From the NCBI RefSeq assembly GCF_001194135.2, contig NC_068989.1, positions 21,507,566 through 21,548,498 of the forward strand: 40,933 nucleotides of DNA. The letters are read 5' to 3'. Positions 760-40,933 of the stretch are shown one piece after another. The number at the start of each line of letters is the position of its first letter. The stretch's first letter is position 1. Under the pieces are notes generated by a model. That model made no database searches, was not told the origin of the DNA, and was given only the letters and a program-made list of their open reading frames with translations. This stretch comes from Octopus bimaculoides (lineage: Eukaryota). Made by a program: the position numbers and the translations under genes.

Positions 760-2340
760 ATGGCTAGACACAACAAACGACAACACAATCGAGGAACAGA
801 ACGAAAACAACAGCTCAACAGGTAAACAAATTCTTCGTAGTTGTAGTTATAGAACAGACTAATTACCAAACTCATTTCTCTTCGAGTTATGAACTGAATA
901 CTGATCTATTTAACTGCTAAAAAATGCGAAACAAAACACCACTGTTGGCTATATGAATCGATTGAAACCATATTGCGACGATCTGCATCCAGAATTAAAT
1001 CATTTTACTGCGAAGCAACTACACCAGCAGGCAACATTTGTAAAACATAGGAAAATGTTTAGTCACTGTAACTTTGTTAAAAAGTCGAAAATTAACCCTC
1101 TTCCCAGCTCTATAAATAAAAACGAAAATGTGATTGATGTAAGACCACCACGTAGTTTCTCAGCTAGCGACATTCCAACAGATTCCATAGTGCCTGCGAA
1201 CCAAACTACATTACTGGCTCAAGTAACTGACCACCGTCCCCCTACCACGACTATGGTAAATAGCAGGCACAACCGCAATGATTATTGTATTAGTAGTGGT
1301 AACCAGCATTATATACCAATAAAATGTACCATTACTAAAATTTCCGAGAAAAAAATAACTTTGGCTTTGAAGTATTCTCTCTACCAAAATAAGTAGAAGA
1401 CCACCAGGTATGGTATTAAAAGCTGTTAACGATATTAGTGATGAGTATTTACAGCAGTATGATGAACCCAAATCCTGGCAGATTAACGCCTGTTTGTAGT
1501 AACTCTCTGGCTACAAACCCCAAAGCAGTACATGAATGACATTCAAAAAGTAAACAAAACCGAAACAACAAAGAAATTAACATCATGGGTTTTGAAGACA
1601 GAGAAAATGATAACTGGTTTACGGGAGACCATCATTCATGTAATGATGCTTATTGCGTGCAAACAAGCACATCATTATACGTCCCACCAACAGAAAGTAA
1701 AGAAGGAGATAGAAATGATGTTTGGAGACAGAAAAAAGAGGGCACTCACCTGCAAACTGATTACCCTCAAACAGGAGTTAAAAACTGTCAGTGAAAAACT
1801 ACGATATCAAAAGAGAATAACCGAGAGAAGAACAATAAACAAAATATTTAACCGGAACCAGGCAGCAGTATATAGAGACATGAGAGGAGGAGCAGTGAAC
1901 ACCACAGAAGTTCTTTCACGAGAAGATATAGACTCCTTCTGGAGGAAAATCTGGAGTGAAAAGAAGGAATTTAATCAAGATGCTCTGTGGATGGAAGAAA
2001 TCCGAAGAAGTTGTTGTTCCTGCGTTATACACAAAACATAGAACATTGATGGTGAAACACTTGCAGCTGTAATCCAGAAACTCCAGGATGAAAAAGCACC
2101 TGGAAGGGACTCGATTGTTGGATATCGGTACAAGAAGCTAACCTACTACCGATCATATCTTATCAATCTGTACCAGTAAGCTCTCACTGGGAACAATAGA
2201 ACACCACACTGGTTAGCTTTAGCAGAGACAAAATTCATCTCCAAATGCAGAACCACCCACATGGCAAAAAAACTACCGGCCAATTGTATGCTAGAACTTA
2301 ATGTATAAGATATATACAGCATGTTTAAACCTCTTCCTCC
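760..2340 (+). mobile_element. Degenerate R4/Dong-like (R2-superfamily) non-LTR retrotransposon, N-terminus to start of RT
   Basis: GYMNRLK..DDLHPEL..FTAKQLHQQA; INKIFNRNQAAVYR; IDSFWRKIWS; KAPGRDSIVGY; KNYRPIVC*NLMYKIYT. Ends at a SINE. Confidence 0.8.
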
Positions 2341-2350
2341 AAGATCATTG

Positions 2351-2697
2351 TGCGTGGCACCTTGAGCAAGTGCCTTCAACTATAGCCTCGGGCCGACCAA
2401 AGCCTTGTGAGTGGATTTGGTAGATGGAAACTGAAAGAAGCCCGTCGTATATATGTATATATGTATATATGTATGTGCGTGTGTCTGTGTTTGTCCCCCC
2501 ACCATTGCTTGACAACCTATGCTGTTGTGTTTATGCCCCCGTAACTTAGCGGTTCGGCAAAAGAGACCGATAGAATAAGTACTAGGCTTACAAAGAATAA
2601 GTCTTGGGGTCGATTTGCTCGACTAAAGGCGGTGCTCCAGCATGGCCACAGTCAAATGACTAAAACAAGTAAAAGAGTAAAAGAGAGTAAAGAGTAA
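2351..2697 (+). mobile_element. SINE family A, 5'-truncated
   Basis: Same body as 15649-16081; (AAAAGAGT)n tail. Confidence 0.9.
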
Positions 2698-3090
2698 CAA
2701 TAAAAAATTTTCGGTTGGACATTTAGAGATGTTGATGGTTAAGGGGAGATAATAAGTGAGTTCACAAGTGATCTGAAAGCTATACCAAGTTGAAAATTTA
2801 TGCAGCCACCAATCAATCCCTTAATTAATCAGTCAGTCCATCAAATCAGTGAATTAATTAATTAATCAAACAATTTATTGCCTAAACAATGAATGAGTCA
2901 GTCAGCCAAACGATCAGTTAAATAAATTTCAATATATACATCCATATTTAATAAATAAGTATAAATTGTAATACTTGCAAAAATATGTATNNNNNNNNNN
3001 NNNNNNNNNNNNNNNNNNNNNNNNNNNNNNNNNNNNNNNNNNNNNNNNNNNNNNNNNNNNNNNNNNNNNNNNNNNNNNNNNNNNNNNNNN

Positions 3091-3448
3091 GAGTCAACAA
3101 CTAGGAAACCACAGGCCAGGCCAGAAAGACAACATGCTTAGAAATGAAGTAGTCGTACCTGGTCGTATGTCATGTATTATGTGGTTCTTCGTCACCCGGG
3201 TTTACTTCGGCTGGTGGCTACATCGCATCTTTGCACCGACTGTTCTAGTTGCCAAATTCACATTGTTTTCGTAGCCAACTTCACACTCTGCGTTCATTAC
3301 GTGGCCAACTGACACCGTGTGTTCCTTCACCAATTCAAATCGTCCACCTCACAGCAAAGACGCACAGAAAAAGGGAATGCGCCGCATGCTTCATATCAGT
3401 CACGTGATCAACAACGTTATTTCTCCTTCGTAACACTACCCACTCCCT
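3091..3448 (-). repeat. Polypurine tract and 3' LTR of the gypsy element (LTR runs into the N gap)
   Basis: AGGGAGTGGGTAG (3448-3436) is immediately followed by TGTTACG (starting at 3435), downstream of the integrase remnant. Confidence 0.7.
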
Positions 3449-4079
3449 AGCACTTTGTTGACCCGACAAAAGTGTTCATTTATAACTTCAGTCTTTACGG
3501 TGACTGTCTTGCTCTTACATTCCTTCTCCTCGATCTACAGTACTTTCATCAACAGATGTGTCCAGGGCGGTCCCTGCTGAACTGGCCAGGCCCATCGTAC
3601 TTCCACAGACGATTCACATACACATTCTTAGGACGTGCCGTCTTGCCTCCTCGAATCTGGTATGTCACTTCGGACGGTCAATTCAACACAGTATAGTGTC
3701 CTTCCCAAAGGCACTGCAGCTTCAGCGACTGTCCCTTCTTCCGTTGGGGATTATAAAGCCACACTTCATTTCCCTCCTTTAAAGTTGATCTCGCTAGCCC
3801 TGGCATCATGCCGACTTTTAATCACTCCACCACAAAACTTCAGAGATTCCCTAACTTGATGGTGTGCCTCTGTCAGTCTCTCTTGCAGATGTTTTATGTA
3901 ACTCTCTCTCTCTTGCAAATGTTTCACATAACGGTGCCAGCAACTTCCTCTAAGAATTTCTTCACGTGGTGATCTTCCCATCAACAGATCAACCAGGAGT
4001 CTCACCCCGTGGCCCAGCATCAGCTTTGCACGTGTATAGCCAGTAGACTTGTGCGTTTCCAAACAATATGCCATCATAC

Positions 4080-4986
4080 ATTCTATGTATTTTGCAAGTG
4101 TAATCTTTCAAAACCTGTCCATTCTCCGTTATCTTTACTTGACACGCTTGCAAAGAAGATTTCAGCTAAGAATTGCGAGTTTTGTAACGTGTCAGCTCAG
4201 ATCAAATTTGTGCTATTTTCTCATCGTATTTCTTTGAGGTTGTACTACATTCTTTCTTTCCAGCTTCTACTAATTATTTTCTGTGAATTGAGAAGCTTCT
4301 TTAATTCCACCATAATGTTATGATTTCCATCTTCAAAACTCAGCAGTTTAAATTTAAAATCTCATGAGTTGGAAGATATTTCCTCATACATAACAGCAAT
4401 CTTCTTACGCATGTTACGCTGCATCTCATCCCGTTTGTTGTTTGCCTGCAACATATTCACCTTTAGTTCGTTAATTTCCTGGATCAGCTGAAATTTACTT
4501 TCTGGCAGTCGGCTGTTGTCACACAGTTTTCCATTTTTTTTTTTTCACTAAAAAGTCTATTTTCTGGTTTCAGTTTTTCGTATCACATTCCTGGTGATGT
4601 TCAAGCTTCCTCTCACTAGCAACTTAAGATTTTAACGCTTCTGTTAAACGCTGTCTAAGCTTCTCTGACTTCGTTGAAAGATTTAGTCTCCTCTACAAAG
4701 TTTTGGCGGACATGTTGCAATTCTGTTCTTTTATCTCTCAGACATCTTTCCATACTGACTTTCCTTTCAGGACGTTCCATTTCTAAGAAATGGACCTTTA
4801 CACTTAGTTTTACAATCCTGACATTGAGAAGAGATTTCACATCATTTACCTCTTTTCTGGTTGCTTTGCCAACATCTTCCATCAAGCCAGTTGGTTGATC
4901 TGTTTTTGTTTTTGAATGGAAACGTCTTTGGACAGATCTTTATCTAGAATTGCATTTTCCACAATTTACGAAGCATTTTCCCTGTC
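4080..4986 (-). pseudogene. SCLT1: Processed, intronless fragment of sodium channel and clathrin linker 1 inside the gypsy element
   Basis: EDVGKATRKEVNDVKSLLNVRIVKLSVKVHFLEMERPERKVSMERCLRDK resembles human QDATIRTKKEVANTKKQCNIQISRLTEELSALQMECAEKQGQIERVIKEK. FEDGNHNIMVELKKLLNSQKIISRSWKE resembles MEDSNRNSIVELRHLLATQQKAANRWKE. I*SELTRYKTRNS*LKSSLQACQVKITENGQVL resembles LKSELSRQKLHTQELLSQLEMANEKVAENEKLI. Human sequence recalled from memory. Collinear, with stops and frameshifts. Confidence 0.82.
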
Positions 4987-5610
4987 TTCCACCAGATCTG
5001 TGCAACCAAGGCTTAGGCCTCCAGCAGAGAACACATCAGCTTGCCTCACTAGCTTCTGCTTCAACCGCAACATTTGAACGTCATCCAAGCACTGATAACT
5101 CGATGCAAACAGGTCTTGTAAATGCACTGGCAGACCCCACTTCCTCAGACTACACTCTTTCTCCAGGTACGCAGCCGACACTGCTCCTTGTCCACTGCCT
5201 GGCACAGTCCACAATTTGTCCTTTGCAAATCTTCTGTGCCTCCCATGAGAAATTGGCCGCCACAACCAGCACCTCGTCAGCACCTGTCTCCACCAGGGTT
5301 CGTTCCACCATCACCTCAGCCTTCATTTTGCTCTTCACGTTCAATCAGGGCATCAACTGGTTCTTTGAGTACAGTACAGTGCCCGGTAACACCATATAAC
5401 TGCTGTGATGACTCTGGTAGGTCTCGCTACTGTAACACCACGAGTCTCACAAAAGTCTGCCCCGAGGCCGAATCAATGACAAGGTCGACACTTCTGGTCG
5501 TCAGTCCTCCCCCCACCTTCGGAGGTGTCTTCATCTATGGTGTTGGGTGCATGTCTTCTTTCTTCTATTCCCTGGCCTCTTTGATGCAGCATCAACGAGT
5601 GTCAGCGTCC

Positions 5611-5763
5611 AACTGATTGTCATGTCAAATTCCCCTTTTTATACCTGTTGCTAGGCTCCAGCAGGCTGCCCCAGCAAGTTGTCACGTGACACTGTCTAAA
5701 CTTCCCGCTGCTAGGCTCCAGCAAGTAGCCCCAGCAAGTTGTCACATGACACTGTCTAAACTT
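5611..5763 (-). promoter_or_regulatory. TATA plus TCAGT initiator, preceded by a 60-bp tandem duplication (LTR-U3-like)
   Basis: TATAAAAA at 5643-5636 and TCAGTT at 5616-5611, with the A of TCAGT 29 nt from the first T of TATA. Near-identical 60-bp units at 5644-5703 and 5704-5763. Confidence 0.45.
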
Positions 5764-5862
5764 TAACTGACAATGGAGGGCGCGAAGCCACTTCAATGTC
5801 AGCCTGTCTCACCTAGGCATGTTATGACTTTCAAGCCATATTTGGTCTTCCCGCTTCAGCCA

Positions 5863-5870
5863 TATATGTG

Positions 5871-5943
<73 letters not shown>

Positions 5944-6041
5944 GCATATACATATATATATCTATACATATAAATATATAAATACATATACATACATATA
6001 TATATGTGTGTGTGTGTGTGTGTCTGTGTGTGTGTGTGTGT
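5863..6041. repeat. (TA)n/(TG)n microsatellite
   Basis: Seen directly. Similar tracts at 1-57, 341-421, 24942-25061, 27420-27520, 30627-30746 and 36730-37000. Confidence 0.95.
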
Positions 6042-6146
6042 GCCAAACAACTCAGCTCCCTTTTATACATAATCTAGGAAAGTAAGCAAATTAGAAAACT
6101 GCAAGAACATCAATGCTCTAATATCAAAAAAAAAAATAATACTTAC

Positions 6147-6688
6147 TTATTACGTGTTCCTTCAATATCGTTAGCTCCTTTTAACGCTTTAACAATTCGT
6201 ACAATCTGAAGATTGGTTTTCAACGGATATTCCTGTCCCGTTAAATTTATGAAATATTTCCATTTTTTATATTTTAACAAATCCCTCATGCAAATTAACT
6301 CAGCTTCCGTTTGAGAAAATACTCCCCATTCAACGTCGACAATGCGAGATGCAATATAAACATTAGGTAAACACTTTGCTATTGCTTTCATGTCACTCAA
6401 TATCAAAGGATTAGAACTTTTATCAACGTGAATGCAGTAGTAATTGTGTGGACGGTAAATGGCCCTCAGTAAGTTTTCAACTTGATCGGGTTTTTTGTAA
6501 AGGCTGATGGAATAAGCAAGAGGAAAGTCTTGTTCTTCTCCTGTAACATCCTTCAGAGTGATATACCTGCCACGTTTCCGAAATTCATCACAATTTTTGC
6601 TCAATTTTTTAGTATATTCTCCATTAGGTAAAGAAACGTGTGGATGTAAGGCAGAGTAGTTTTCTGCGTTCGACAAAGCAAATTCATC
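6147..6688 (-). CDS. GCNT: Catalytic-domain exon of a core-2/I-branching beta-1,6-N-acetylglucosaminyltransferase (GT14, Branch domain)
   Basis: Translation DEFALS...EEQDFPLAYSISLYK..QVENLLRAIYRPHNYYCIHVDKSS...SRIVDVEWGVFSQTEAELICMRDLLKYKKWKYFINLTGQEYPLKTNLQIV carries GCNT family motifs. Acceptor ttttcttttcacaccAG (phase 0) and donor AA|GTAAGT (phase 2). The paralog (GCNT1/2/3/4) cannot be assigned. Confidence 0.93.
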
Positions 6689-6879
6689 CTGGTGTGAAAA
6701 GAAAATTGATTTAAAGCTAAGCAAATGAGACACGCAAATGAAACACAAAAGGAAAAGTAACGCAGAAATAAATATAATGAATTAATAAGCAGACGCGGGC
6801 GTAGCTGCAAAGATAAAAGGTTCATTTCTCAGTCATGTGTTCCGAAGCTAAGCCCAGCTGCTTAGCAATTTGAAAATGT

Positions 6880-8850: not shown

Positions 8851-9831
8851 TCAAGTTTCTTGACTTGCTTGACGATTCACTTTCCTTCGAAAATAATCTT
8901 TTAAAAAACACAATGCATTCAGTGTTTTACCTGACAAACTTGTCCTAATTTTTGTGTTGAAAAGTCCAGTAATTGAAAAAGCTCTTTCCGACTGGACACT
9001 AGTTACTTTAGTTGTAAACAATGCTCTATAAAGTTTATCAACCTTTTCATTTCTGTTCGAAGTTGCTTCAAAATATTCGAATTCTTTAGAGATTTCAAAT
9101 CCATCTGCTACTATCTTAGGCTCTTCCTTCATTTTCTTCATTGCGCTTGTATATTCACGCATGAGTTCATTACCTTCGTAAGTAGATGGGACAACAGTAA
9201 CATTTGTTTTTAGGTCTCCTCCTATTTCATTTTCTTTGTATAATTCTGTTGTGTTCTCAGCGTCATGTTCAGGAAATTATCTCCTATATGTTTGATCAGC
9301 ATACTTCCTTAAATGTTGTTTCGTTATAAAAAGAAAAGGTCCAGAAATTAATTCATCTTTAAACTTCCTTGGATTATGTAAATACCTCAAGGGAGTCAAG
9401 GTTTCAACATTTCTTCTCTTATATCTATGCATAAGCCTTTCACGAGCCAAAGGGTTGCCGACGATATTAAGTTTATTCAATAAAAATTCTATAGAATATT
9501 CCGCTTTCAGTAAATCCATATCATCAGTGCAAATAACCTTCAAAATAATTTCTACTGGATGCAGAATTTCATATAGTAAATTGAGAGATTTCCACTCTTC
9601 GTCAGCCACAGCATATGTGGAAAGTACTGCTCGTAGAGCATTAGGAATGCAGCTTTTCAATTTCAAAAATCTCTCAATCATATGGAATATGCTATTCCAC
9701 CTAGTTCTGCAATCCAGTATAAGTTTATATTCTCTGTTATCAAAGTTCGCTCGTACAAAATCTTGCAAAATTTCATTTTTTGTAGGAGATTTACGGAAAA
9801 GTTTTGAAATTTTTCTTACCTTATTTAAAAC
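8851..9831 (-). pseudogene. hAT transposase C-terminal half; one in-frame stop at 9277-9279; 5' part in the N gap
   Basis: VLNKVRKISKLFRKSPTKNEILQ, LILDCRTRWNSIFHMIERFLKL and the dimerisation motif VTSVQSERAFSITG. The ORFs 9277-9768 and 8851-9162 share one frame. Confidence 0.9.
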
Positions 9832-10694: not shown

Positions 10695-12629
10695 GCCAGG
10701 GGTTAGCGAAGGAAATGACAAGGTGCTGATCTAAGGTTCAAGGGGAGAGAAGGTAAGAATATGTTGATATGTTGCGATATGTTTCAATGAAACAGACAGC
10801 ACTTTCAACTAAAGGCGACCGACAACAGTTCAGTTAGTTCAGTTTCAACGATATTTCTTCAAAAGAAAAAAATGAAGAAATGTTTTGCGAAAAAAAAAAA
10901 ATAGAAACAACAAGCATTAAAATCGGTTTTGGCAAATCCGTTTCGGTTTTACTGATCATAATATAAAACCGGTTTTAACCGGTTTTATAAAACCGGTTTC
11001 GAGCCCTAGTCAGGACCTATACATACTGTGATGTTTCCTCCCATCTTTTAGGTTGCCGTCCTGTTTCTCTTTCCATTAGTCAGCCTTCCAAACTGGTGTT
11101 AACAACTAGAGCTCCAGTATGCTTTCTAACTACTGCTAGACTTTAAAAAGAAACATATGTGAGGTAAAGTACAATGGAAAATTAAATCAAGCTCTTTTTT
11201 AGACGACATGTATGATAGCTATATAGGTCTTTAAAATGAAGCTTCATGCCACACAAATACCTTATTTGATATAGGTATGTTGAAAATTAATATGGATTTA
11301 TTCAGGGGATTGGAAAAAGTTTTTGCTCCAACATATTCCCGAAAAGTTTTTGAACTATCAATTGAAAGTCACTAATCAAGCAATATAAATAAGACCATAT
11401 AAGTAAAGTGTCTCCACTATTAATAAGGCACATCGATCACAGAGAAAATATTCAAAATCAACCCTTGAGTCATAAAAAGAGAAATCTCTCAAGGAGACTC
11501 GAAATCTCTCAAGGAGACTCATAATCTCTCACTAATTTTTTTCCAAACGCTTACTCCATTTACAATTTATATAATTAGAGTGTTTTAATGTTATGTATAA
11601 ACTGTAAACCTTCTCTTCTATACGGTTGATTTGTAAATATTTGCAAGCGATAATATCCAGAGGTAAAAAATCTACTAACAAGTTTTCGCAAATTCTGCCA
11701 AAGCATAAACTTGAGTCTAAGGTAAGGCAAATGTGAAAACGCTGCTATAAGATGACACAAAATAAGTAAAACTGAAAATATACAATAAGATACAAATATC
11801 AAAACTAGAGATTTAGACTAAACCCATCTCTACAAATGCTTAAGAGTAGATGAGACTGATAAAATATAATGCTCAGAAATTAAGAGAAATAGGAAAGATT
11901 ATTAGAGAAGTATTATTAAAAAATAAATTGCAGGTTAAAAGTAAGCTCGTGTATATAAATCTTCCGAGTATAAACTACAGCTTCAGAAAAATAAACTGGA
12001 AGCAAATATTAAAATTAATATGCAGAAACTACATTTTATTTTCCGGGCTGAGATTCGAAACCGAATCTAAGGATTCTCGCTCGCCTGATTCACGGTTAGG
12101 CTGACTTGGCGAAAAAAAATTTCTTTATCGTGTCTGAAAGTGATGGATGAGTTTCCACTCGAACTCCAACCTGGGCAGTCACGGAAAGTTCAGATGGACA
12201 ACAAGTGACCTAAATAAGTACAAACTGCTCTTATGGCATATCTATCCTTCTAGCTAGGATAGCCATTATAATTACGGTTGCTTTAGACATATGCCAATTA
12301 GCAACATAGCAGTGACCGCTGACACAAGACAGTAGCAGTTGCAGACCACGAACAGACGAAATAGAAAAACAACACAACACGACCAAATGACAAATGCACA
12401 CACAGACACAAAATATACCTTGTACTATCTCGTCACATCAACATTCTCTTTCCTCCATTTTTACTTTGCCAACTCGAAGTAGTTGGTAACTTTAAGTAGC
12501 GGCAGATTTGGTCATATTTCAAATCAAGCTCTCTGTATCTAACACGTAAATGCAACTGTTAATCAAATAAATTATGAAAACTGCATTTCTATTCTTTTTC
12601 ATTTGTTTTCCTTTGGTGTCGGACCAATA

Positions 12630-15648: not shown

Positions 15649-16081
15649 GGCGCAGGAGTGGCTGTGTGGTAAGTATCTTGCTTAGGAACCACATGGTTCT
15701 GGGTTCAGTCCCACTGCGTGGCACCTTGGGCAAGTGTCTCCTACTATAGCCTCGGGCCGACCAAAGCCTTGTGAGTGGATTTGGTAGACGGAAACTGAAA
15801 GAAGCCCGTCGTATATATGTATATGTATATATATATATATGCACGTGTTTGCATGTCTGTGTTTGCCCCACCACCACCACCACACACACACACACATCGC
15901 TTGACAACTGATGCTGGTGTGTTTACGTCCCCGTAACTTAGCGGTTCGGCAAAAAGAAACCGATAGAATAAGTAATAGGCTTACAAAGAATAAGTACTAG
16001 GCTTACAAAGAATAATTTGCTCGACTAAAGGCAGTGCTCCAGCATGGCCGCAGTCAAATGACTGAAACAAGTAAAAGAGTA
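15649..16081 (+). mobile_element. SINE family A, full length (tRNA head, CORE-like GCACCTTGGGCAAGTG, central microsatellite)
   Basis: A/B-box-like head TGGCTGTGTGG / GGGTTCAGTCCC. Copies at 2351, 22754 and 32565. The tail unit GAATAAGTA..AGGCTTACAAA is duplicated. Possibly one of the described octopus tRNA-derived SINEs (inference). Confidence 0.9.
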
Positions 16082-17369: not shown

Positions 17370-18420
17370 AAATGGAATTATCACATACACTCCTCTTCCT
17401 TTTGTTTTTGTACAAGTGCATTATAGATGCATCTTTGAACTACTGGAGAACAGATCCAATTTCCCAGATAAGACAGATTAATTTGCACAACTTACTTACA
17501 AGACGTCTGCTACCATGCTTGTACACCTTTATGGGAATATCGTGTTGTTTAAGAGCTTTACCACTGGAAAGTTTTTTGATAGCAGTACTTATCTCTTCCA
17601 AGGAAGTATGCTCTATTAGTTCTTTAATTATAGATTACTGGGGATTTTGTTGATTACATCAGCAGTGGATTCTTGATTTGATACAGATTGAAAATGTTCA
17701 GCCCATCTTTTCAGAATTTCATCTTTTCTACTTAAGAGTTTTGTTTCATCTTTTTTTCGGTCAAACACATTTTTCAGAATGTTATACAGTTTTCTCAAGT
17801 TGTGAGAATTAGCAGCCTGTTACAATTCTTGGACTTTTTTTGTTCACCAAACTTTTCATCTTATGCAGTTTTCTGCATAGTTTTTCTAGAGGAGATGTAC
17901 TGGAATCTATATGTTGGCGAGTTTTTGTCTGAGATCCATGTCTTGTGTCTCTTGTGCAAAGTTTCTAGGAGAGGTTTAATTTGAGAATCGTTCTTGTTGG
18001 TGTTTGTGTTTCACAAATCTTAGAACTACTTCGGCAGGTGTTTTGATGTTGTCACGAATATTGTGTCACAACAATTCAGGCATTTCTCTAATTCTGGAAG
18101 CTTTGAATTTAAATGGATTTCAAACTTTTTTGTCGTTTCTGGATTTTTTAAAGAAGCAACGTTTGTTCTCGGATGTAAACTGGATTTCTGTAGCTTCTTT
18201 GCATACGATTTTACAAATACCTTGCTGTGAACAATTCTGTGATCCAAGTAACACTTGGGAATTTTGTGAGTTCTGGTTAATCTGAAATCACTGCAATCCT
18301 TGTTCTTAGTTATAACATAGTCCAGCATGTGCCAGTGACCAGATGAAGAATGCTTCCAGGTGCTTTTGTATTTGGTGTAGTTCCAGTCCATCTAGAGGTT
18401 ATGTACCTGTAGAAGAGGTC
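17370..18420 (-). mobile_element. RTE-clade LINE fragment (end of APE endonuclease to start of RT)
   Basis: KSTWKHSSSGHWHMLDYVIT..LTR..CYLDHRIVHSK; DEILKRWAEHFQ; FKDASIMHLYKNK. Confidence 0.8.
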
Positions 18421-22560: not shown

Positions 22561-22753
22561 AATGGTTTGATTAAAAAGAAATTACTTTTCACTTTGCACT
22601 CACCATCGCCACTTCCACCACCAATGTCACCACCACTTTCACCACAATCATCTCTCTCTTCCTCTCACTCCCCTCTCTCTTCCTGTCTCTCTCTACCTCT
22701 CTCCCTTCCCTCTTTCTACCTTTCTTTAATCTCACCACCAGAACATCACCTAT

Positions 22754-22971
22754 CTCTTTTACTCTTTTACTTGTTTCAGTCATTTGACTGAGGCCATGCT
22801 GGGGCACTGCCTTTAGTCGAGCAAATCGATCCCAGGACTTATTCTTTGTAAGCCCAGTACTTATTCTATCGGTCTCTTTTTGCCGAACCGCTAAGTTACC
22901 GGGACGTAAACACACCAGCATCGGTTGTCAAGCGATGTTGGGGGGACAAACACAGACACACAAACATATAT

Positions 22972-23023
<52 letters not shown>

Positions 23024-23196
23024 ATATACATATATACGACGGGCTTCTTTCAGTTTCCGTCTACCAAATCCACTCACAAGGCTTTGGTCGGCCCGAGGCT
23101 ATAGTAGGAGACACTTGCCCACGGTGCAACGCAGAGGGACTGAACCCGGAACCATGTGGTTGGTAAGCAAGCTACTTACCACACAGCCACTCCTGC
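22754..23196 (-). mobile_element. SINE family A, full length
   Basis: Reverse complement of the 15649-16081 body. Confidence 0.9.
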
Positions 23197-24029
23197 TAAA
23201 ATTATATTCCTAACTCTCCTCTGTATCATTACCTTCAACTAAGTTTTTTTAACCACGTAATAGATATTACTACCACATGTCATGGACGCTTCTCTCTCCG
23301 TCTTTTCTCTCTCCCTCTCTTTCTTTCTCTCTCTTTCTGCCTCACTCTTCACCTTATCCCCTTTTTCTCGAATCACATGAAAGCGTCTCCGACGGGTTAA
23401 GTAACATAATGACAAGCAGAATTATTATATGACTTTTTTTCACAGATCAACGTTATACGCTTGTTCGCTCGCGATGCATTCACCTATTTCCTTCTCCACC
23501 ACCTATACGGGAAATCATTCTAATCATTGTTCTCTCCCCTGATGTATAATAACTATTTCATCCCTCATTTTTGTAGTATTTCTTTCTTACAAATCATGCA
23601 CTTCTTGTACCAGATAAATCTATTTCCCACCAAACCCTCTCTGTTCTAAGTCACCTAAGACGGAAAAGAAGAAGTCTGAGCACACACCTATTATTAGGAC
23701 TAAGAGAACCAAAATGTCACCAAGAACTATTCAAACTCCTCCCCCACTACTCTTCCTATTATGCCTAAAACTTTAAGGCAATCACCCGAAGGCTGTAATA
23801 TGAGAGAAGCTAGAAATATGAAGCAAAGAGAAGGGGAGAGAGTGAAAGAGAGAGACAGAGAGTTAGAGAAGGAGAAAAAAAGAGACGGAGTTAGACCGAC
23901 AGAGAGAAAGAGAAAGAGAGAGAGAATGCGAGCAGGTGCAGAGAACTGAGGTAAGAGTACCGAAGCAACACCGGATGCCCCAATCTACCCCCTTCTAAGA
24001 AGTCACAACCGAGGAACCTTAATATCTAT

Positions 24030-32564: not shown

Positions 32565-32735
32565 GTCGCAGGAGGGGCTGTGTGGTAAGTAGCTTGCTTA
32601 CCAACCACATGGTTCCGGGTTCATTCCCACTGTGTGGCACCTTGGGCAAGTGTCTTCTACTATAGCTTCGGGCCAACCAAAGCCTCGTGAGTGGATTTGG
32701 TAGACGGAAACTGAAAGAAGCCCGTCGTATATATG
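32565..32735 (+). mobile_element. SINE family A, 5' half ending in the N gap
   Basis: Head and core match the other copies; the gap begins at the central microsatellite. Confidence 0.9.
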
Positions 32736-40129: not shown

Positions 40130-40933
40130 AAATTTACAGCGACAATGCTCTTCCCAATATGTGTAACGTACCAGTTAAGACAATCTTTTGCACTTCCTGC
40201 ATGGATGGTAAGCCAGGGATCATAAATAATTTTCATCCCCTTTTTGATCAATCATTCCAAGTGCTTCTACAATCACTGGTATTGTAACCGTCTTGAGATG
40301 CTAAATCTTTTCGATTTCGATTAGCAAATCTTTATATTTTCTGAGTTTATCAAATTCTTTTGCCGAGATATTATGATCACAGGGTATGCTCATGTCAATC
40401 AATAAACAGACATTATTGTTTTGTTCTTTCACAACAATATCTGGTTTATTAGCTTTGATGGTCCGGTCTGTATATACTGGAAAGTCCCAAAGAATCGTTA
40501 GATTTTTTTCTCCCTCAGTTGCAACCTCAGGGTGGTGCTTGTACAATTTGTCAGCAGTTTTGATTTTATAATGCTGACACATTATTCATTGTAAATATTG
40601 GCCAACTCTGTCATGTCTTCATTCGTACTCTACAGGTGCTAAAACCTTACATCCAGAGATTAGGTGGTCCACTGTTTCAATCCCATCGTTGCAGTATCGG
40701 CACTTTCTGTCTACACCATTTTTCATTACATGGGCTTGATAGTTCCGAGACAATAAGCTCTGATCCTGAGCAACCAAGATAAAGTCTTCACTCTTTGCTT
40801 TTAGCCCTGAGCTCCATAGCCACTGATGGGTTTGTTTCTGGTCGACATCGGCTTGTTTGCTACGGGCCATAAATTTGCCATGCAGAGGTTTTGTTTCCAC
40901 CTATCAGCCAATTCTTCAAACGTATTTTTCTTT
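40130..40933 (-). mobile_element. R4/Dong-like non-LTR retrotransposon 3' end (CCHC knuckle plus REL endonuclease)
   Basis: KPLHGKF..QAQDQ-like VAQDQSLLSRNY..CRYCNDGIETVDHLISGC; TILWDFPVYTDRTIKANKPDIVV..LIDMSIPCD..KEFDKLRKYKDLLIEI. Stops and a frameshift present. Confidence 0.9.

Follow-up and report, generated by a model that had tools for sequence, protein, structure and literature searches.

In a 40,933-nucleotide (nt) stretch of the Octopus bimaculoides genome (NCBI RefSeq assembly GCF_001194135.2, contig NC_068989.1, positions 21,507,566 to 21,548,498 of the forward strand; hereafter the window), the minus strand of positions 5545–3091 holds a decayed, 5′-truncated copy of a non-autonomous Ty3/gypsy-type long terminal repeat (LTR) retroelement. 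In this element, everything from the start of the reverse transcriptase (RT) through the catalytic core of the integrase (IN) is replaced by approximately 0.96 kb of what appears to be spliced mRNA of SCLT1 (sodium channel and clathrin linker 1), a host centriole gene (codons ~298–618 of 692). The insert has no introns, no poly(A) and no mRNA 3′ end, and its 5′ junction with the element recurs, identical, at an unrelated locus in Octopus vulgaris. We suggest that the chimaera probably arose through LTR-mediated retroposition, that is, through a reverse transcriptase that switched templates twice, and that it was later mobilized in trans.

The element and its SCLT1 insert

All three minus-strand frames of 5900–3091 carry stops and frameshifts, yet the protein-coding relics still stand in a fixed order, which from 5545 to 3091 runs protease (PR) remnant, PR-to-RT linker, SCLT1 insert, IN C terminus, purine tract and LTR start. 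The parts are as follows (L001 and P0001 denote, respectively, a second copy in O. vulgaris and a protein from that locus, both described below):

~5545–5331, minus strand: aspartic protease remnant, frameshifted, with LVIDSASGQTF at 5483–5451
5334–4990, minus strand: PR–RT linker, the final pol sequence before the insert, ending ..FSAGGLSLGCTDLV(E) / ..FSAGGLSLGCTDLVE; O. vulgaris P0001 aligns across it
4989–4987, minus strand: junction 1, a GAA codon that fits both pol (TDLVE) and SCLT1 (..IAEDRKN); an in-frame fusion, the same in L001/P0001
4986–4079, minus strand: SCLT1 mRNA fragment (908 nt), intronless and in sense orientation, collinear with Argonauta residues ~298–618 of 692
4078, minus strand: junction 2, one T that separates the last SCLT1 codon (ATG, 4081–4079) from the first recognizable IN codon
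4077–3552, minus strand: IN C-terminal remnant, beginning MMAYCLETHKSTGYT.. / MMAYCLETHKSTGYTRAKLMLG... and followed by a double stop at 3551–3546
3448–3436, minus strand: polypurine-tract-like AGGGAGTGGGTAG, directly 5′ of the LTR; its counterpart in L001 is AGGGAGGGGTAG
3435–3091, minus strand: 5′ part (345 nt) of the presumed 3′ LTR, starting TGTTACG (3435–3429) and interrupted by a 100-N assembly gap (2991–3090)

The upstream flank is made of protease and linker. The DNA of the protease remnant is 82.5% identical to L001 9393–9574 and lacks ~255 nt that are kept in the O. vulgaris copy (L001 9575–9828). It is homologous to P0002, an O. bimaculoides protein named 'aspartic peptidase DDI1-type', which itself matches Asp_protease_2 of Pfam weakly (E 5.7e-4, under the cut-off) and gag-asp_proteas weakly too; the window piece has no Pfam match. 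The linker ends in ..SLGCTDLVE (5007–4987).

The downstream flank comes from the other end of pol. Within the IN remnant, which has one frameshift (near 3770), an Integrase_p58_C/SH3-like domain at ~3695–3600 scores 28.5 bits against a Pfam gathering cut-off of 27. In BLASTP the tail aligns to P0052 from residue 107 onwards; because residue 71 is the last of the rve core in P0052, the window retains only the post-catalytic part of the integrase (starting ~36 amino acids (aa) after the core). The closest relatives of this tail in a collection of 5.8 billion proteins are IN C-terminal fragments (P0050–P0055) with rve, SH3_Tf2-1 and Integrase_p58_C domains. A 30-nt tandem duplication at 3877–3932 (..YVKHLQERES / YIKHLQERLT..) appears as a 13-residue insertion relative to P0052. 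The purine tract and TGTTACG that follow are conserved in L001 (81.7% identity over window 3472–3322).

Both the gene order (that is, PR upstream and IN last, directly before the polypurine tract (PPT) and the LTR start) and the IN C-terminal domain bear on classification. The order is that of Ty3/gypsy elements (and retroviruses), not of copia, and the domain is of gypsy/Tf2 type, as judged from its own Integrase_p58_C score and from the domains of P0050–P0055; the RT, on which a phylogenetic placement in the gypsy clade would draw, is missing from both copies. No minus-strand frame of 3091–5900 has a Pfam match to RVT_1, RNase_H or rve. In typical elements, the stretch from the RT start through the IN catalytic core would measure an estimated ~2.5 kb.

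As for relatives of the element itself, a search for an autonomous partner or an intact family member with a PR-plus-linker protein query returned only P0001 and P0002, and a query spanning junction 2 and IN returned only IN-tail fragments at 35–45% identity, none of which carries SCLT1. Exact look-ups of the window open reading frame (ORF) across junction 1, and of P0002, found no matching record.

The insert is a fragment of SCLT1. A word-indexed search with the stitched 299-aa translation gave no match and also missed P0001, coiled-coil words apparently swamping the list of 600 candidates. An exhaustive HMMER (phmmer) search of 1.84 billion representatives matched 24 proteins, the best of which is a 626-aa protein of Argonauta hians (P0003; E 3.4e-111, 74% identity, query 2–299 against residues 240–552). 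The next matches (E 2e-22 to 7e-6) are proteins of 650–730 aa, aligned over ~335–650 and named 'sodium channel and clathrin linker 1' across six phyla; their sources include a hemichordate, amphioxus, a gastropod, the cnidarian Nematostella, Priapulus and mammals (for example, a 688-aa squirrel-family SCLT1, aligned at its residues 359–650). An E value of 3.4e-111 from a search of ~1.8 billion proteins excludes chance similarity.

Aligned to the window by tblastn, the full-length Argonauta SCLT1 (P0026, 692 aa) gives five collinear high-scoring segment pairs, which cover residues ~298–618 and window 5003–4079 (joint E 1.4e-102) and are spread over three frames. Six in-frame stops interrupt the insert, which has also suffered at least four frameshifts and several small deletions. 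Argonauta hians has two SCLT1 gene models on different contigs (L002 and L004; 692 aa and a partial 626 aa), both multi-exon, which may be haplotigs or a recent duplication. The idea that the top match P0003 is itself an Argonauta retrocopy was rejected, as P0003 is a 14.5-kb multi-exon gene model.

To place the introns of the parent, the Argonauta SCLT1 gene (L002) was mapped exon by exon, with exact translation and GT/AG borders required. The captured interval of that gene contains eight GT–AG introns of 137–1499 nt (after residues 315, 348, 372, 397, 446.67, 511, 556.67 and 603). When the window, L001 and the Argonauta gene are aligned as nucleotides, the window is uninterrupted at all eight exon–exon joins and L001 at the first five. 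Seven of the eight positions are also exon borders in the gastropod Gigantopelta aegis; the exception is the intron after residue 315 (L002 12806–13229), where Gigantopelta has a single exon (L003 13134–13340). As the seven positions common to Argonauta and the gastropod predate cephalopods, introns were almost certainly present there in the Octopus parent gene, and, judged against these two relatives, the insert would be a spliced copy of an intron-containing parent.

These results bear out much of a first-pass annotation of the window. Every part that it listed on the minus strand is present and in the order that it gave, and the limits that it set for the insert (4080–4986) are right to 1–3 nt by tblastn with P0026. 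The match to human SCLT1 at ~335–655 that it gave finds its counterpart in the named SCLT1 proteins, including the mammalian one aligned at 359–650, and the comparison with SCLT1 proteins that it proposed gave the phmmer and tblastn values above. Its report of an insert without introns likewise holds against the eight introns of the Argonauta interval and the seven kept in the gastropod.

Junctions and a second copy in Octopus vulgaris

Around junction 1, ..ACAGATCTGGTG GAA GACAGGGAAAATGCT.. in the window stands against ..GACATTGCT GAA GACAGGAAAAATGCT.. in Argonauta SCLT1. Identity to SCLT1 starts at or within the GAA codon (4989–4987), 33 nt inside an exon, and the pol frame runs on into SCLT1. 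In gypsy elements 'T.LVE' is normally followed by 'H.I.T', the start of the RT region, so the overlap between the two partners may be ~3 nt. At junction 2, SCLT1 ends ..AAAATACATAGAATG (4079) and is followed by one T (4078) and then by integrase (ATGATGGCATAT..), where the Argonauta gene instead continues GAAACCCATTTAAG; the integrase is read in a frame shifted by +1 from that of SCLT1.

Both breakpoints thus lie mid-exon, and the last 74 SCLT1 codons and the 3′ untranslated region are absent. There is no A-tract at junction 2, and no direct repeat or target-site duplication (TSD) brackets the insert. The flanks are discontinuous parts of pol, as the upstream one stops at TDLVE before the RT and the downstream one resumes 36 aa past the rve core. 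Insert and pol share one orientation, and in both copies the pol frame passes unbroken through junction 1.

Some candidate signatures near the joins were rejected. An A12 run (~4545–4534) is not a poly(A) tail but coding sequence in the middle of the alignment, where the parent encodes KENENMK. TGGAA, found near both junctions, is not a target-site duplication, as the flanks derive from different parts of pol. Nor can GGAAAC(G/C)CA be the microhomology of a template switch. In SCLT1 this motif stands directly 3′ of the breakpoint, but on the integrase side 17 nt (TATGATGGCATATTGTT) separate it from the junction.

A search with the flanks led to P0001, a 144-aa 'hypothetical predicted protein' of O. 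vulgaris that reads across the same junction 1 (..FSAGDLDLRCTDLVEGRENAQQIMGNAILDKDL..) and whose locus (L001) lies on OX597830.1 of a chromosome-level assembly. The two copies, which are the only ones known (n = 2), share an identical junction 1, the PPT and the LTR start at 77–82% nucleotide identity: window 5510–5328 aligns at 82.5% and 5334–4392 at 77.5%, after which the alignment jumps to 3472–3322 at 81.7%. Upstream of PR, L001 carries a CX2CX4HX4C knuckle that was seen by eye (CWLCRKPGHKKQEC); the knuckle region has no Pfam match. At 10949 of L001 the similarity to the LTR ends, and mariner-like reading frames, also recognized by eye, follow on the opposite strand (10949–11600), which suggests that a DNA transposon inserted into the LTR of this copy.

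Besides the element, the 40.9-kb window and the 20.4 kb of L001 share only dispersed SINE-like (short interspersed nuclear element-like) repeats, and the two loci are therefore not orthologous. That two unrelated loci, each from an independent assembly, carry the identical junction 1 excludes an assembly artefact and indicates that the chimaera multiplied after its formation. The substitutions speak to what followed: differences between the window and L001 are even across codon positions (0.227/0.161/0.204), whereas between the copies and the Argonauta gene the third position dominates (0.47–0.50), so that the parent gene evolved under constraint and the copies did not. Both copies decay neutrally, and they are now ~20% divergent from one another.

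The remaining claims of the first-pass annotation concerned the nature of the join and also stand. None of the three outcomes that it had named as counter-evidence was obtained. It had described an insert in the orientation of pol and free of poly(A), to which the in-frame fusion at junction 1 can be added. It had further proposed that the RT–RNaseH–integrase core was replaced, in agreement with flanks that are not contiguous, have no RVT_1, RNase_H or rve between them and enclose the insert with no bracketing poly(A) or TSD. Its reading of the whole as a non-autonomous chimaeric element is supported, together with transposition of that element, by the non-syntenic O. vulgaris copy with the identical 5′ junction.

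Origin of the chimaera

LTR-mediated retroposition has been reported in Drosophila, mosquito, zebrafish, chicken and mammals (Tan et al. 2016, Genome Res 26:1663; PMC5131818), with earlier examples in yeast Ty1 and maize Bs1 (PMC5131818). In the model proposed for it, the in-particle reverse transcriptase leaves the element RNA for a co-packaged mRNA during minus-strand synthesis and then returns (PMC5131818). For the octopus element, we envision that an SCLT1 mRNA was co-packaged in a virus-like particle and that the reverse transcriptase, in synthesizing the minus strand, copied U3, the PPT and the integrase C terminus. A first switch, at what is now the integrase/SCLT1 join, would have taken it onto the SCLT1 mRNA at codon ~618, which it would have copied back to codon ~298; a second, at the SCLT1/linker join, would have returned it to the element RNA at the PR/RT boundary, whereupon the cDNA could have been finished and integrated. 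Having retained gag, PR, PPT and LTRs, the chimaera may have been transcribed and mobilized again by the proteins of an autonomous relative, and the at least two dispersed copies that have since decayed neutrally may have resulted from this.

We infer the template switches from the architecture, which agrees with the published criteria for LTR-mediated retroposition (PMC5131818), that is, an intronless copy that replaces internal ORFs, has no poly(A) and occupies several insertion sites. Several observations weigh against such an origin. A search of the window and of L001 turned up neither an LTR pair nor any further copy, and no target-site duplication of the whole element was detected at either locus; the window copy has no gag, is 5′-truncated and has its LTR cut at the assembly gap. 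The overlap of pol and SCLT1 at junction 1 is possibly as little as 3 nt (GAA), and an orphan T intervenes at junction 2. Junction 2 is documented in the window copy only; L001 has lost this join through a separate deletion, which stretches from SCLT1 codon ~515 to a point shortly before the purine tract. As that deletion shows that secondary deletions occur in this element family, junction 2 could itself be a later deletion. Lastly, non-LTR retrotransposon remnants (zf-RVT) lie in the same window, and long interspersed nuclear element (LINE) machinery thus existed in the genome.

The chief alternative is a course of events in which a LINE-made, 5′-truncated SCLT1 retrocopy was inserted in sense orientation into gypsy pol at the PR/RT boundary, one deletion then removed its 3′ end and poly(A) together with the RT–RNaseH–integrase core, and the crippled element was mobilized in trans. 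LINE retrocopies are typically cut short at the 5′ end, at a point that may fall anywhere within an exon, and this counts for such a course, as do the reality of internal deletions in the family (L001), a junction 2 known from a single copy and the non-LTR RT remnants of the window. It would, however, require two independent events that left no poly(A), mRNA 3′ end or target-site duplication, and a junction 1 that happened both to keep the pol frame exactly and to coincide with a domain boundary. The sole A-run, A12, is coding sequence inside the collinear alignment. Given also that published metazoan cases of the same architecture are ascribed to template switching (PMC5131818), we regard this course as unlikely.

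The joins might instead have been made at the DNA level, by repair of a double-strand break in a genomic gypsy copy with free SCLT1 cDNA as filler, or by ectopic recombination with an SCLT1 retrocopy, the product being duplicated or mobilized later. Filler-DNA repair can give the same ends (an intronless fragment that replaces internal sequence, with little or no homology at the joins), and the junction sequences do not separate an RNA-level from a DNA-level join. Such a scenario nevertheless needs free cDNA or an earlier retrocopy, with evidence for neither, and makes coincidences of the sense orientation and the preserved frame, whereas a product that kept all its cis needs and reached a second locus is what would be expected of particle-made cDNA. 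We therefore consider a DNA-level origin quite improbable and favour template switching within a particle.

A further question is whether the fusion was ever of use. One could imagine that an in-frame Gag–PR–SCLT1 coiled-coil fusion was expressed from the LTR and aided the spread of the family (for example, through altered particle trafficking), or that the host co-opted it, with intact and constrained copies elsewhere in octopods; we mention this as a speculation of very low probability. That the gag–PR–SCLT1 fusion serves, or once served, as a functional or domesticated coding sequence seems to us harder still to credit. It is in frame at junction 1, and the O. vulgaris annotation includes a 144-aa ORF (P0001) that spans this join, but the window insert is broken by six stops and at least four frameshifts, the two copies differ from each other evenly over codon positions and the integrase is out of frame at junction 2. 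For the window copy and L001, a functional fusion is largely refuted. The chance that the whole is an assembly artefact or a chance similarity is negligible, for although the window is gap-rich (seven N runs), the same junction stands in an independent chromosome-level assembly, in all likelihood from a different octopus species, and the SCLT1 match has E 3.4e-111.

Genomic surroundings and known systems

The chimaeric element lies downstream of a host exon and in the same orientation. The features on this side are:

6146–6748, minus strand: exon of a Core-2/I-branching enzyme with 201 open codons (Pfam Branch, E 3.3e-26), ending AAG/GTAAGT at 6143
5546–5860, minus strand: sequence 5′ of the recognizable element, which may or may not belong to it

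With a GT donor at the end of this exon, the element probably lies in an intron of the Branch gene. The sequence at 5546–5860 resembles neither the gag side of L001 nor the 3′ LTR piece. It includes two 60-nt tandem units that are 90% identical (5644–5763) and both contain a GTCAC(G/A)TGAC palindrome; TATAAAAAG comes after them (~5635, minus strand), and the whole looks promoter-like. A relationship between this 60-nt repeat and a 62-nt repeat of L001 (8283–8406) was considered and rejected, as the two are unrelated. A (TA)n/(CA)n microsatellite block at 5861–6050, between the 5′ side of the element and the host exon, may mark the point at which the element was truncated.

Other mobile sequences are scattered through the window. 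The remnant of a hAT transposase C terminus (Dimer_Tnp_hAT, E 1.3e-7) lies at 8854–9162 and 9280–9768 on the minus strand and adjoins an 863-N gap. The non-LTR retrotransposon relic is at 40622–40900 (minus strand; zf-RVT, E 1.4e-6), and two further stretches (1532–2038, plus strand; 18029–18391, minus strand) look LINE-like by eye only and have no Pfam match. The SINE-like dispersed repeat, ~350–450 nt long, occurs at window 2351–2697, 15653–16081, 22750–23207 and 32569–32735 and at L001 19616–20036, with 82–92% identity.

Set beside known ways of moving host sequence, the octopus element resembles several of them in part. LINE processed pseudogenes, in which any truncation affects the 5′ end alone, retain the 3′ end of the mRNA with its poly(A) and lie between target-site duplications. 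The octopus insert is likewise an intronless mRNA copy, but the 3′ end, the poly(A) and the TSDs are all missing from it, and it is cut short at both ends. In acutely transforming retroviruses that transduce oncogenes, spliced host sequence takes the place of replication genes, in many cases fused in frame to gag, and the product is defective and helper-dependent. These retroviruses are like the octopus element in this replacement; they differ in that classical models derive them from a read-through transcript of an upstream provirus and a single recombination, in that selection acts on the function of the captured gene and in being infectious viruses rather than intragenomic elements.

Closer parallels are found among LTR retrotransposons. 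The chimaeric pseudogenes of yeast Ty1 (Derr 1991; Schacherer 2004; both as represented in PMC5131818) are Ty-flanked retrocopies in which a partial mRNA was captured in Ty cDNA by template switching; they were induced experimentally and their junction microhomology is known, whereas the octopus events are natural and ancient. Maize Bs1 (Johns 1985; Jin & Bennetzen 1994; Elrouby & Bureau 2001, 2010; again as represented in PMC5131818) is similarly non-autonomous and RT-less, with host exon sequence inside it and a few copies of the same structure. It differs in carrying pieces of three genes and in being reported as expressed, in contrast to the single gene fragment of the octopus element and the lack of constraint in its two copies.

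The nearest likeness is to the metazoan retrocopies of Tan et al. 2016 (for example, Drosophila CG17604_r), in which a partial, intronless mRNA replaces internal ORFs of an LTR element between discontinuous flanks, with no poly(A), and in which insertion is genic (for the octopus element, probably into an intron of the Branch-domain gene). The fly cases are young and polymorphic, whereas the octopus copies are old and decayed (~20% apart), and the published cases show microsimilarity and LTR pair features where the octopus element offers a possible overlap of ~3 nt (GAA) at junction 1 and no detected LTR pair. The host, a cephalopod mollusc, belongs to a group outside PMC5131818 (the term 'mollus' is not in its text), and a full-text literature search found no report of LTR-mediated gene capture in cephalopods, nor one involving SCLT1.

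What is described here leaves knowledge of the mechanism unchanged, being mechanistically expected, and the copies seen are now inert. The case is nonetheless unusually easy to read: the position of each breakpoint is known to a few bases, the insert lacks eight introns and the same junction stands at another locus. Octopus annotations may list other such chimaeras among their hypothetical proteins, as they do P0001. Relative to the systems above, this is probably the first cephalopod case of a known mechanism, and it extends RNA-based gene duplication and exon shuffling by LTR-retrotransposon template switching, together with mobilization in trans, to the cephalopod molluscs.

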